Below are positions 31,301 through 37,300 of a DNA stretch of 64,000 bases, in pieces. The notes below the pieces were generated by a model. That model was not told the origin of the DNA. It searched no databases and saw nothing but the letters and a program-made list of their open reading frames with translations. The first letter of the stretch is position 1; every line of letters starts with the position of its first letter. The translations under genes and the position numbers were made by a program. This stretch comes from Bugula neritina (Eukaryota; Animalia; Bryozoa), in NCBI GenBank assembly GCA_964035545.1, contig OZ037771.1, positions 2,057,628-2,121,627 on the forward strand, in the 5' to 3' direction.

Positions 31301-34300
31301 TAATACAAGTTGTACAAGGTCTAAGTAAAAGTATAATTTTAAAGCTTATGTACTGTTAGCAGCTCTCCTAAAAAACCTAAGGGATTTGAAGAAAATTTTC
31401 TTCAAGATAAGGAAAATACTTTTATATTTGCCAAATCAAGTTTATGTACTTAAAAGAAAAGTTAAAGTTATGTATTTAGAAATGTTTTCAAAATATTGAA
31501 TTTTCACCATCAAAGCAAGTAAGTTTTCCAACCACAGGAAATAATACAAAAACAAATATTTGCTCTAAACTCAAATAACTGAAGGGTTAATATACAGACC
31601 TGAGAGACAGAGAGAGTTCAGGGGGGCATAATCCACACACAGCTGGAGAGGGGAGCTGTTTATATCATCCAAACTCACGCCAAAAGGAGATATTGGTCTA
31701 AACCGGGTCCTAGGGTCTACATTTAGATAGTTGTCCCCTCTTCTTTGCCTATCACAGTGATGTACAATATTATATGTATTATTATTAAGAGAAGTGTCCA
31801 CAGAAGATATACAGAATGAGATAAAAAATTTTAACGACACTTTAGGGTGAATTTCAGCTTTACTTATTTTCATCGTGTTTAAATAAGGTTTTATGAAATG
31901 CTTATATTATATTGATAGAACAGCTTTCGTAAGCTTCCAAACACAACACATTTTATCTAACACCTGCTAAGCCTGTGTGAAGATCTATGACAGCCTGAGA
32001 GAGAAATTGATTGCTTATTTAAAGATAATTAATGTAATTGATGATATAAACTTTTACAAATTATGACATGTATACAACGGGACCTTACGCCATCCATGAC
32101 GTATGTGACATAAGGTCAAGTGACATGTATAAAGTGTAACCTTATGTCTCACGTGACAAATGTATAACATATAATCTGTAGTTTGGAATATTTAGAGGTT
32201 TCCACTTACCATTCATGCCAGACCTTGTCAATGAAGGCAAAGTGCGAGATGACTATCGGATCATAAATAGCATTCCTAGTCAGTGCATGACCTCCGACCC
32301 AAAGTCTAAAACAACATATAGTAGACACCACTTGTGTCAGTCAGTATTTACCCCAGTTGAGAAAACATGCGATGGTTAAACTTAATAACCATGAGCTCTT
32401 TTGCAGTGCATTTAACTGAAGTTACTTTAAATATCTTTTAGATGGTGTTCCATAGGTGACAACGAAAAATGGCCAAGTTTTATTATAGTTATATTTAGGC
32501 AAATCTAAAAGCCCAAGCTGTGTTTATTAACCTGTATGATGTTGCAATATCAATTATTGAATATAGTTGTGTGAGCTAAAATATTTGTTCTAACTTGTAT
32601 AATAAAACTTATACAATAAGAAAAAACTATCTTTCCTTAGCCGTAGAGTGTGAATAACACAAACATGCTACAGTCTAGCCATGCACTTTACCGAAAGAGC
32701 AAAGAAGCAGAACTGAGTTGATTGTTGAGAGCTGTGAAGTTCACAGATCTCCTAATGTTCTCAATAGCGACAGCGTCAGGCAGCGAGAGAGACAGCGAGT
32801 TTCCGAAGTCTCTTCTTAAACATGGTGACCAAGGCACTCGGTTGATAAAAGGGTGGTGCTTCACACAGCCAGTTGCGTTATCCCCATTTCCTGTAAACAA
32901 TGCAGTCACTTATGAGTCTACTTACTCCTGTGTAATTCAACCTTACAATTTATGTGCAATGACTATTAGATTTGTATGTTGGTAAATACAAACAGTAGTT
33001 AGTTTTAGCAATTTAAATAGATTATCACCAATATTCTATTTAAATTCATGTACTGATTTAAACTAATTTTCAGAGTCTGCTGTAATATAATAGAACTACC
33101 ATTAAACCCATCAAAGTACATCAAGATACTATTAAAAACAAAGTTCCCAGGTAAGATACACTTTGCTTGAAAAATTGAGCACAAAAAATTGTGAAAAAAT
33201 ATAAAGAGTATATTCGATGAGAATAGATTGCTACAAGAAAATTCAATTCACTCGCTTTAGAATTATTGTAAATAACTAAAAAAAATTTAGGAATTTTTAA
33301 AATGCATTTCCTTAGAGAGAAAGTTGCAATATAAAGTTGCGAAAGCTCGAGACATCTCTTTGGTGATAAGTACAGCCATGACAAACCTCCAAACAATCCA
33401 GCTCGCCATATTGGTGACTCCAGCATGGCACCAGTGTCCATCGTCCAATCAAAATAGGGTATAGTGAGTTCACAGGAAGCAGCAGCTGTTTGTAAAGCCT
33501 TTTCTAATTGGTTAAGCATTGCTCTATGCCAGGCTAGAAAGTTGAGTCCAGTAGAGTGGCTGTGTGGTAGATACTTCTCGTACAACTCTGAGAACTGTGT
33601 CCACGTGCCTTGAGAGTATAACTACAATTATGATATAAACCTTAAGTCAATATGAAGTTGTATACGAGGAGTTGTTGCACTATTAACTAGTGGGAAATAT
33701 TCCCCCCCCCCCTTCTTACCAGTGATAGCAGTGATTATAACATAAAACTTAATACAATAGAAATTTGTAAAAGAAGGAGTTGTTGCACTATACAGCACTC
33801 CCATGAGATTATCCTAGCAGTAACCGGTTGATCAACCCCCCCCCCCAGCACCACAAAACTTCTGCATGGGATCTATTATCCATAATTAATTGATTTTGTA
33901 CTTGAGTTAGAATTAGACCAAAGCCTATTAATCAATACAACACAGAATTTGCACAGGCAAGTTTTGTAGAATTCAGACTTACATAACACATTTACAAATG
34001 CACTTTAATTTGGTAGAGGTTGACAGTATTCCTCATAAGACGCATGAATCTCAGTAACATCCATGTTATATGAAACTGTGTCATACAATTTTAGTGTTGG
34101 CATACATAAGCCATTTCTTAACTGTTTAGCAATGCAAAGGAAGCTATGAACAGAAATCAACTTCTTTTCTACCAATAAATATAATTTCATAAAAGAAATA
34201 ACTATTTTGCTTTGCGCAGTAACACAAGCCTCACAATAGCAGGTTCTTAGACAGACAGACAGACAGACAGACAGGTTTTTACCTTTCTGACAGCTCTCTG

Positions 34301-37300
34301 GTAGTCGGCTATTTCCTTCGCAGTCATATCTCTCACTTCCTTTCTTTCTACAGTCTTTGAGCATGTGCACTGCACACTTCCTGTTCTAGTACATATGCAC
34401 TGATTGCAACCATCAGTGAAGACTTGCTCTATATCATAGTGATTTCCATTGTACTGGCATCCACGGCAATGAGTTGAGTTGTTACACAGCGACACTGAGC
34501 ACTCACTGTCTCCAGCAGAAAAGGAAATGACCTACAAATTGTTTTTGTGCTTAGATTTTGCCAAAATATAAATATATTACTAAAGAAACGAGATATTTGT
34601 GAGGACTCAATTGATACTAACACAACTAAATTGCTATCAATCCATAGACATGACGGCATTAAACCAGGGACCACAACTAGCACAGGGTAAATAAAAATGT
34701 TCTATTTTAAACGATAATATCAAATACATATGTTTGTATAACATAACTACAAACTCTCACACATCAACTGGAAAATGTTACAATCTGTACATTTCAAAAA
34801 TGGAAATACCTTTGTTATGAAAAGGAGACAACTCTAACATCACTTTCTATAAGACATGTGTAGCACCAGCATAGTGTGTAAAAGTTAAAATTGAATAAAA
34901 CAGCATCACCTTACATTTGAGACAACAAAAGAATCTGTTACATAATACATAAAGTCATAAAATAATGTAATGTCTAAAGTCACAGCATTATATAATGCAC
35001 AAAATCCCAATAATATGTAATACATAGTCACAACATTATATAAAAACTGCTGCAATTTTATCTCTATCCAGTTGTTCTGTTTAAAATAGCTGCAGAGGTT
35101 TGAAACTTTTACCTGCTGCAAATAAAACTGCATCACCCACCTCGTCCTGAGAGTTGTTGGACTGGACCTTTCCCATGCACTCAGTTTTACTGGTGAGCTC
35201 ACAGATGTAGCTGAAACCTGCAAGGAGACCGTCTTCATTGAGACTGCTGGAGTCTAGACCTTGACAGTTGTACCCAGTTCGAGCGTACCGGTCTCTGTTG
35301 TACCCGTCTGGCCTGTACCCTAGCAAATACACCATATATACATACCGGTTACACATACTCATATACGCAAAAGACCTTCAGTGCTCTACTGTGAATAATA
35401 TTTACAAAAACCAACAGAATTATTTTTCAAAAGCAACAAAACTCAATGCACAAGACTCAAACTATTGAATTCCTGTAAAAATTTTATTTGCAAAGCAGAA
35501 GAACACTGCAATAATGCAAAAAGTATAAAGTAAAGAAAAACTAAAACAAAAAGCTAAGCTGTAGTTTGAATATCTGAAAAATATTGAACCTGTTTTATAT
35601 TTTAAATAATTTTCTAATATCTTGTTTAGTATATTTCACAAGAATTTTTGTGTAATCATTGTATGCATTCACAAGAGAATGCATGGAGATGCCAATACTT
35701 ATAAACATACAAAACAAATAAAATATTATTATATTAAACTGGATTAAAATAAAAATGCTGTATAAAATATTAAAAAGAAATACTGAGGCTATAACTCTAA
35801 AATAACAGTTTTCTATTAGAGTGTGTAGTGAAGACTTTTTGGTACAACTATACATTTCGAAAATTAGTAAAAAAGATGCAACTTTGATACCCACCTTTGT
35901 AATCAACCCCTTGAAACCTGTATCTAAGGCTACCAAATGCTGTAGCAGTTTGTATTTTGGCTCTTTTTCCTTCTGCATTAATTCCATTTTTGAAGCCATA
36001 TCTGCAAATAATAACAGAAAATAATAATAGAAAATAATAGCAGAGAATGATAATAGAAAATAATAATAGAAAAGGTTCTCCTAAAGCCACAAGAGTGAAC
36101 AACACTTGCTCTTACATTATAATAACACTTGCTTTAATGTCATATTTCTAGAGTCGTCCTCCCCTTTTGACATCATTTAAACTCAATAAAAGATTATTAT
36201 GGAAATATAGTTAAGTTTACATCACTGATTCGTTGAGCAGTTCAAAATTAAAACAAAGTTTATTGCAAGAAGCTACACAACAATCAAATTAGCTTGTTTA
36301 AAATAAATTATTTAAAGAAAAACTATTATTAACGCAACTAACAAAGATATTGAACATGTTAGTTTAAGTCAGCTTTGTGCGTGGGGAAAATAAACTGCAC
36401 GAGAAGTGATGCTAATGACTATACAACATAAAACAGGACACGTTAAAGACTATTTTCAATTTATGTGTGTGATAATATTTCCAATAACTGAACATAAATA
36501 ATGAAATAATGCAGGCTAATAATAGAGTGTCAGGAGTCATTGGCATAGAAATGCAGGTACCAGCAAGTGCTATATCTAGAAAGTCATTTTTGACAGCTAC
36601 ATTCAGTTGCTAAATCTGTCAGCAACAAAATATTTGAAACATTTAGTTTAGTTAGAGAGACAGAACTTTGCTCTTTGTTTAAGGCAGCAAATGCTGCTAT
36701 GGCTAACAAATATGTCATATGTGAAGCTGTCAATTTAAATTATTATGTAACCCAACACCATGAAATAGCAAATGGCAAAACCGGGTATATTAAAAATTCA
36801 CTACCACTGTCTTGTATATCAAATCCATAGTTATTTTATTGCTAGTAATTTTTTCATTATCATTTAGCTGCTACAATAGAAAGTTCCCACTATACTTTAG
36901 CATTGCAAGGTCATTGATATCTCATAAAATATGCTGCTGCAGTTTAGCAAAATAGTATTTAGTTGAAATTTAACAAAAAAAATTTTTGCAAAAAAGCAGT
37001 TTTTTCATCATACAAAAATATTAGTTACAGAAATCAATGCATACTCAAAGTTCAAGTCATGAACTTTGCCTTATGAATGATGGTGATTTGAAAAGTATGT
37101 TGAAATAATAAGAATAAAGAAATGTTTTATTAATCTATCAGTAGGTGTGCAGTATTCAACTACTAACAACGTGATGAGAGAGTAGATAACTTCTGTATGC
37201 CAAAGGTTCTCAAAGATTTTTTAAAGAGTTGGTATTGATTTTTGACATGGTAAACACAAAATATACTACATAAAATACTTTCTGGGTTTAATACTGTCGA

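Follow-up and report, generated by a model that had tools for sequence, protein, structure and literature searches.

The stretch of DNA analysed here comprises 64,000 nucleotides of the bryozoan Bugula neritina (GenBank assembly GCA_964035545.1, contig OZ037771.1, positions 2,057,628 to 2,121,627; hereafter the window), an AT-rich eukaryotic sequence with a GC content of about 33%, and it carries on its minus strand a tyrosinase-like feature distributed over five exons (E1 to E5). Our analyses indicate, with a probability that we put at about 0.8, that this region is the tyrosinase-like domain of a giant secreted kielin/chordin-like protein, in which it would act as a selected, non-catalytic module. 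Of the six histidine ligands that type-3 copper proteins require, only two remain and one of these is out of register, which excludes a dicopper, O2-activating centre for the predicted domain and would make classical phenol oxidation impossible. Judged by sequence, the domain is an orthologue of an ancient and conserved copper-less tyrosinase-like module of kielin/chordin-like giants. A previous sequence-only reading of this DNA had described the domain as a pseudoenzyme, a view supported by the two remaining histidines, by a ratio of nonsynonymous to synonymous substitution rates (dN/dS) of 0.014 and by a ligand loss that is common across Bilateria.

Gene model and the former copper sites

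The exons, and the residues that now stand at the ligand positions of the two copper sites (CuA and CuB), are as follows:

34283..34531, minus strand: exon E1, a Cys-rich half-VWC lead-in followed by the first helix of the tyrosinase-like domain (RKEVRD...RAVRK)
33387..33621, minus strand: exon E2, the former CuA region with the motifs FLAWHR and IPYFDW
32692..32890, minus strand: exon E3, the inter-site loop (CV.HHPF, W.PC) and the former CuB-1 helix, ending in SSASLLF
32210..32305, minus strand: exon E4, LWVGGH..., holding the former CuB-3; the CuB-2 Arg codon CG/A spans the preceding intron
31600..31748, minus strand: exon E5, beginning QRRG, the C-terminal part of the domain (WQ...PFG...LCVDY), aligned to family members
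33582-33580, minus strand: CuA-1, Tyr, in E2
33558-33556, minus strand: CuA-2, His, in E2, out of register by one residue
33528-33526, minus strand: CuA-3, His, in E2
32705-32703, minus strand: CuB-1, Ser, in E3
32693-32692 plus 32305, minus strand: CuB-2, Arg, a split codon at the E3/E4 junction
32241-32239, minus strand: CuB-3, Phe, in E4

All splice sites from E1 to E5 are of the GT-AG type with compatible phases, and the junction codons read GGA (Gly), CGA (Arg) and TGG (Trp), the last two bases of E3 being the start of the Arg codon at the former CuB-2. E1 is bordered by the acceptor ttgtag and the donor AAG/gtaaaa, aligns with residues 1339-1420 of the Lingula protein P0007 and gives a weak Pfam match to Pacifastin_I. 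The domain had previously been placed at 31600-34345; its location stood, but the upper limit had cut E1 short, as this exon begins at 34531. The scaffold motifs reported at that time (RKEVR, FLAWHR, IPYFDW, WVGG, DP and D..W..WQ) were all recovered on the minus strand, and the description of an intact domain over five exons agrees with the GT-AG borders, the fitting phases and the match to the Pfam family Tyrosinase (PF00264).

Exons were used singly in searches and alignments, and composite statistics are sums over exon rows. The alignment to the Pfam profile that had been suggested earlier placed the domain in PF00264 by a significant match of E2 (E 7.4e-11, 43.3 bits against a cut-off of 22.6, profile positions 14-66), and E4 matched the same family (E 0.009, 16.8 bits, profile positions 179-209). 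A six-frame PF00264 search of the 216-Mb assembly scored 40.1 bits at the minus-strand tyrosinase-like locus, and neither this search nor one with the family profile gave any further cassette or PF00264 domain elsewhere in the assembly, results to be read as lower bounds.

Simple repeats were also observed in this part of the gene, namely a (CAGA)n microsatellite immediately past the E1 donor (34242-34281) and two poly-C runs in intron 1 (33694-33704 and 33838-33848). A source-like sequencing run (X1) carries two extra C at 33701, and a homopolymer length error in the assembly is possible.

Ligand columns were defined in two ways, in a hidden Markov model (HMM) alignment that combined the exon translations, each as its own row, with relatives and molluscan hemocyanin units, and by aligning the exons residue by residue to solved tyrosinases. 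The ligand state in the window is Y H H (CuA) / S R F (CuB), with four of the six positions occupied by residues other than His. Type-3 copper proteins have a six-histidine site with the CuA motif H-x(n)-H-x8-H, a Phe at position -4 relative to the third His in both sites, and an Asp at position +4 relative to CuB-3 (PMC3658974). In the window the CuA motif is broken both by the Tyr at its first position, seen in the corresponding HMM column as had been claimed, and by the spacing of the other two histidines, which are H-x9-H instead of H-x8-H, again as first noticed; the CuB motif H-x3-H-x(n)-H has given way to Ser, Arg and Phe. Translations of the exons retain the Phe before CuA-3 (F-L-A-W-H) and the Asp at position +4 (AFID), and the Phe before CuB-3 is now Val (DPIVISHF).

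Alignments to solved chains point to the same columns. E4 aligned over residues 195-225 of the Streptomyces tyrosinase 1wx2_A and also to 9t62; the L of LWVGG corresponds to residue 195 of 1wx2_A, which puts the preceding Arg at residue 194, and the Phe of SHF corresponds to residue 216, where 1wx2_A has the second His of its HH pair. The His of WHR in E2, an exon that aligned to solved hemocyanins as well, corresponds to residue 63. Residues 194, 216 and 63 of 1wx2_A are copper ligands. The HMM and solved-chain alignments thus bear out the earlier statements that CuB has lost all three histidines and that Phe replaces the second His of the HH pair.

Histidines of the motifs PHSH, KHH and GGH had been named as possible members of a substitute dicopper site, and no conserved replacement site was found among them. 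The second His of PHSH is Tyr in the relative L007; only the second His of KHH is kept, being the His of a family-wide HPF motif; and the His of GGH is no marker of a new site, since a solved ortho-aminophenol oxidase chain, 9t62, has it too. It seems quite improbable to us that the domain is still a metalloprotein holding one Cu or Zn ion, either through the surviving CuA histidines (H20, H22 and H32 of E2) or through newly conserved ones (HPF, GGH, SH), an arrangement that could allow a redox or metal-dependent binding role. Three histidines do lie near each other in the CuA segment of the window and of two relatives (L005 and L006), and nearly all domains of the family type to which the window domain belongs (type 2, described below) retain the His of WHR, HPF and GGH as well as the first one in the former HH pair. 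However, H22 is Tyr in L007, type-2 domains have N, G, Y, S, H, A or R at CuA-2 and R, Q, H or Y at CuA-1, the His after GG in 9t62 deprives that residue of diagnostic value, and the spacing of the last two CuA histidines differs between close relatives (9 or 7).

The fold was modelled on the Limulus orthologue domain (P0020:373-653, ligands Y H H / S H I) with an 84-row alignment. The AlphaFold model reached a predicted local distance difference test score (pLDDT) of 90.4 and a predicted template modelling score (pTM) of 0.88, and it matched Bacillus megaterium and Streptomyces tyrosinases with template modelling (TM) scores of 0.73-0.78 and E down to 5e-16 (TM 0.77 and E 5e-16 for the Bacillus megaterium enzyme, 4hd4/3nm8), so in the Limulus orthologue the tyrosinase scaffold, a four-helix bundle, is predicted to survive without the copper ligands. 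The superposition on a tyrosinase structure that had been recommended therefore succeeded for this orthologue (TM 0.77) and reaches the window domain by extrapolation only.

Purifying selection on the domain

A representative search with E2 returned short, exon-sized proteins at 95, 71, 64 and 59% identity, and their contigs were compared with the window. L002, a 28-kb metagenome contig from the Joint Genome Institute (JGI), belongs to a sibling lineage of the source organism. Over the five exons it differs from the window by 52 nucleotides, 49 of them synonymous and 3 non-synonymous (dS 0.30, dN 0.0044), and the dN/dS check suggested in the sequence-only reading gave 0.014, which indicates strong purifying selection. 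The E1 protein is 100% identical despite 16 synonymous changes, and the extension of this exon adds 3 further synonymous changes and zero replacements; protein identity is 98.5% in E3, and every one of the 10 nucleotide differences in E5 is synonymous. The four introns between E1 and E5 are 77-88% identical. Neighbouring stretches of the same gene gave dN/dS values from 0.02 (0.023 for the Kunitz exon) to 0.38, measured on stop-free stretches with some intron flank, so that dN is overstated and the values offer rough context only; in this comparison, its ratios inflated by intron flanks, few parts of the gene are as constrained as the tyrosinase-like exons.

The more distant relatives L005, L006 and L007 (59-66% protein identity) have the same exon borders and open frames, and in all three CuB-1 is Ser and CuB-3 is either Phe or Tyr. 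The codon for the CuB-2 Arg is CGA in the window, CGG in L005 and AGA in L007. Synonymous sites are saturated in these comparisons (proportion of synonymous differences, pS, 0.83-0.90), leaving only dN, at 0.24-0.34, as a usable measure.

By these substitution patterns, the tyrosinase-like exons are selected coding sequence under very strong purifying selection. That they could be a decaying remnant, a pseudo-exon block or pseudogene no longer contributing to a protein, might be suggested by the missing catalytic residues and by the search for RNA runs, which yielded none for this stretch. We nevertheless give this explanation almost no credence, considering the 49 synonymous against 3 non-synonymous differences to L002, the absence of stops, frameshifts and lost splice sites, the frames kept intact in relatives whose synonymous sites are saturated, and the rank of the domain among the most constrained parts of the gene.

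In a separate observation, two sequencing runs labelled as the source organism (X6 and X7) carry the L002 variant, which differs from window positions 31400-34600 by about 6% in exons and 12-23% in introns. The variant points to a sibling lineage or a cryptic species, and a 2016 'symbiont metagenome' contains it as well. Two apparent joints in X6 and X7 were considered as signs of splicing and ruled out, as they are diverged intron stretches with different letters between them.

The host protein and its family

The tyrosinase-like exons lie within a longer series of exons on the same strand:

38234..38344, minus strand: EGF-like exon, upstream of the cassette (PF00008, E 1.8e-5; matches Lingula P0007)
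37691..37882, minus strand: Kunitz/BPTI exon (PF00014, E 1.8e-12; collinear with Lingula and Limulus)
35174..35323, minus strand: G[YF][DN] repeat exon before the tyrosinase-like domain (matches Lingula 1280-1329 and Limulus 268-317)
30544..31223, minus strand: two G[YF][DN] repeat exons after the tyrosinase-like domain (about 31223-31075 and about 30750-30544)
13600..29336, minus strand: array of VWC (chordin-type Cys-rich) exons, with stop-free Cys-rich translations and collinear tblastn matches to the Lingula and Limulus proteins
10401..13554, minus strand: VWC-VWD, C8 and TIL exons at the 3' end of the gene (PF00093, PF00094, PF08742, PF01826; collinear with the C-termini of P0007 and P0020)

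About 25 VWC-like exons separate the tyrosinase-like region from the 3' domains, for which Pfam places VWC-VWD at 13.5 kb, C8 at 11.0 kb and TIL at 10.5 kb on the minus strand. The resulting order, EGF, Kunitz, G[YF]D repeats, half-VWC, tyrosinase-like domain, G[YF]D repeats, VWC array, VWD, C8 and TIL, is that of the kielin/chordin-like cassette family, as judged by Pfam on the exons and by collinear tblastn: the Lingula protein P0007 (4190 aa) and the Limulus protein P0020 (3090 aa) matched the window collinearly from Kunitz to the terminal TIL. Moreover, E5 and the next repeat exon are compatible in phase (G/AT, Asp), and single chains from a shark, a horseshoe crab and a crinoid (P0018, P0020 and P0048) combine Tyrosinase, 22-32 VWC and VWD. 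Tyr/Phe-rich G-[YF]-[DN]-x-x repeats follow the tyrosinase-like domain in all family members, from choanoflagellates to fishes, and matched no Pfam family.

Because strand, order, phases and collinearity with the orthologues agree, we infer that the tyrosinase-like exons and the VWC array belong to one transcript and one very large secreted protein. Alternatively, the Kunitz/tyrosinase-like cassette might be a separate, shorter gene or an isoform beside a kielin-like VWC gene, as could be suspected from cassette-only database relatives of 549-812 aa (P0117 of Patella, P0013 of Osmerus and P0028 of Macrobrachium) and from a search of RNA runs that gave no transcript over the window gene. We consider this unlikely in view of the shared strand and the collinear order from Kunitz to TIL with the 3090-aa and 4190-aa proteins, the joint presence of Tyrosinase, VWC and VWD in the shark, horseshoe crab and crinoid chains, and the compatible phases after E5.

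The database kielin/chordin-like proteins Lingula XP_013412584, Limulus XP_022244270, Hemiscyllium XP_060698749, Anneissia XP_033101456, Argonauta GAB1599713 and Branchiostoma C3YUQ0 share the domain order of the single giant protein proposed here and are collinear with it over the whole gene. They have the same ligand loss (Ser at CuB-1, never His at CuB-3) and 40-45% composite identity in the tyrosinase-like domain, but they are automatic annotations that have not been studied, and several keep the CuB-2 His where the window has Arg. Xenopus Kielin and mouse KCP, extracellular modulators of bone morphogenetic proteins (BMPs) made up of chordin-type CR/VWC repeats and a VWD domain, resemble the predicted protein in having a long VWC array with VWD and TIL after it at the C-terminal end. 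To our knowledge, Kielin and KCP as described in Xenopus and mouse have neither a Kunitz nor a tyrosinase-like part.

The E2 search listed 150 relatives out of 1.8 billion representatives, and 26 of these listed proteins scored above 280 bits with a cassette profile, against at most 237 for ordinary tyrosinases and hemocyanins. In the tree the cassette family is a clade with 100/100 support, separate from hemocyanin. Named members come from Lingula, Argonauta, Patella, Limulus/Tachypleus, Macrobrachium, Anneissia, Ptychodera and Branchiostoma, from the shark Hemiscyllium and the teleosts Osmerus/Hypomesus, Arapaima and Metynnis/Serrasalmus, and from the choanoflagellates Salpingoeca rosetta, S. 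urceolata and Hartaetosiga. The ligand census found at least three of the six histidines missing in every bilaterian domain examined, and all six present in P0031, P0045, P0017, P0026 and P0032, which include several choanoflagellate members. A check of histidine loss in orthologues had been advised, and the loss proved common to brachiopod, chelicerate, crustacean, cephalopod, hemichordate, shark and teleost domains.

Two types of domain can be distinguished. Type 1 is a clade (100/99 support) with deuterostome and lophotrochozoan branches that often keeps CuB-2 and CuB-3; type 2, which the tree does not resolve as one clade (an open comb), has Ser at CuB-1, LWVGGH, and a CuB-3 that is never His (SH[non-His]AF.D). 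The window domain displays all three type-2 features, and it shares 40-45% composite identity with type-2 rows, 30-35% with type-1 and choanoflagellate rows and about 20% with hemocyanin. Lingula, Argonauta and Ptychodera have two cassettes, one of each type, whereas one, of type 2, was found in this genome, and type 2 is also the only type in the Limulus gene. Parsimony applied to the census leads us to infer that the type-2 CuB-1 and CuB-3 ligands were lost before the protostome/deuterostome split.

The choanoflagellate proteins (PTSG_11343, PTSG_12389 and 'mantle protein 9' of S. rosetta, and those of S. urceolata and Hartaetosiga) share with the window both the clade and the cassette, which consists of Kunitz, a Cys-rich lead-in ending in R[KR]E[IV]RD, the tyrosinase domain and G[YF]D-type repeats, with Kunitz 190-300 residues ahead of the domain. 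They differ in that several have six histidines, the VWC/VWD array is absent (as noted for P0031, P0030, P0017 and P0045) and composite identity to the window is 31-35%. Since choanoflagellates carry the Kunitz and tyrosinase cassette, it is older than animals.

Elsewhere in the window, exons at about 53400-57300 (minus strand) translate like an alpha-amylase-family enzyme, and an intron of this gene (54200-54840) is filled by a long TG/CA-type microsatellite. From about 61000 to 63730 (minus strand) the translations resemble a beta-1,3-galactosyltransferase-type glycosyltransferase, with an (AG)n run after one exon (about 61070-61170). Both resemblances were read from translations only. A long trinucleotide repeat of the GCA/CTG type lies at 2445-2635 and would give poly-Leu, poly-Ala-Thr or poly-Cys depending on frame.

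Proposed role of the copper-less domain

Active alpha-subclass tyrosinases and molluscan hemocyanin units (3nm8, 1wx2) share FLxWHR, PYxDW, VGG and DP...D..W..WQ with the window domain, which differs from them in the missing six-His site, in the Val that replaces the Phe before CuB-3 and in its place within a multi-domain protein that exceeds 3000 aa. Among arthropods, the hexamerins and the pseudo-hemocyanins (cryptocyanins) descend from type-3 copper proteins, have lost the copper and its His ligands and were retained in a non-catalytic role; they belong to the beta subclass (the arthropod hemocyanin type) and are free hexameric storage proteins. The likeness is an analogy; their ligand loss is independent of that in the window domain, and at the family level covered by our comparisons the two are not homologous. 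The ascidian Tuphoxin (PMC9395347) was considered as a precedent and ruled out, because this TSP1-tyrosinase protein has all the copper histidines. One sentence in the literature mentions tyrosinase sequences of more than 3000 aa with kielin/chordin-like domains (PMC11667028), and in our literature search the family was otherwise undescribed; such proteins also go unmentioned in a survey of type-3 copper proteins (PMC3658974).

Some points weigh against the reading of the region as a non-catalytic module of a giant protein. Our search of sequencing runs found no RNA run covering the gene, all aligned runs being DNA and without splice joints, so that the splicing of the exons and their link to the VWC exons are deduced from the conservation of splice sites, from the phases and from collinearity with proteins predicted in other species. 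Given the short relatives of 549-812 aa, a cassette lacking the VWC array might be produced as well, the fold of the window domain is an extrapolation from the Limulus model, and one metal ion might still be bound despite the loss of the classical ligands.

Nonetheless, the tight constraint on the whole domain, replaced positions included, argues for a structural or binding role in an extracellular protein. The domain may act as a rigid globular spacer or a binding surface within an extracellular scaffold resembling a BMP modulator, in which the former active-site pocket or the surface would bind a partner; the sequence-only reading had likewise proposed, as a conjecture, a binding or oligomerisation module. 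The old substrate pocket could possibly still take Tyr or a phenol-like ligand, offered by the flanking Tyr-rich repeats or by a partner protein. The constant flanking by G[YF]D repeats, from choanoflagellates with a complete site to vertebrates without the ligands, suggests that the ancestral enzyme may have acted on these repeats, and we speculate that the dead domain may bind them still.

A bolder and rather doubtful extension is that the copper-less domain is a bilaterian-wide 'reader' derived from an active holozoan Kunitz-tyrosinase cross-linking enzyme. Such a reader would have kept the old pocket, with Arg or aromatic residues at the copper positions, and would bind partners bearing Tyr or 3,4-dihydroxyphenylalanine (DOPA), for example matrix proteins or the G[YF]D repeats beside it, thereby tethering or gating the BMP-modulating VWC scaffold. 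If true, kielin/chordin-like proteins would contain, in this 'reader', a functional part that has escaped notice and persists in sharks and teleosts.

Overall, our results describe an alpha-type tyrosinase domain that appears to have been built, without its copper site, into a giant extracellular VWC protein and to have been retained from lophophorates to fishes. The family would provide a dated example, open to testing, of how an enzyme became a structural or binding module in the animal extracellular matrix, and it draws attention to a part of annotated BMP modulators that has gone unstudied.

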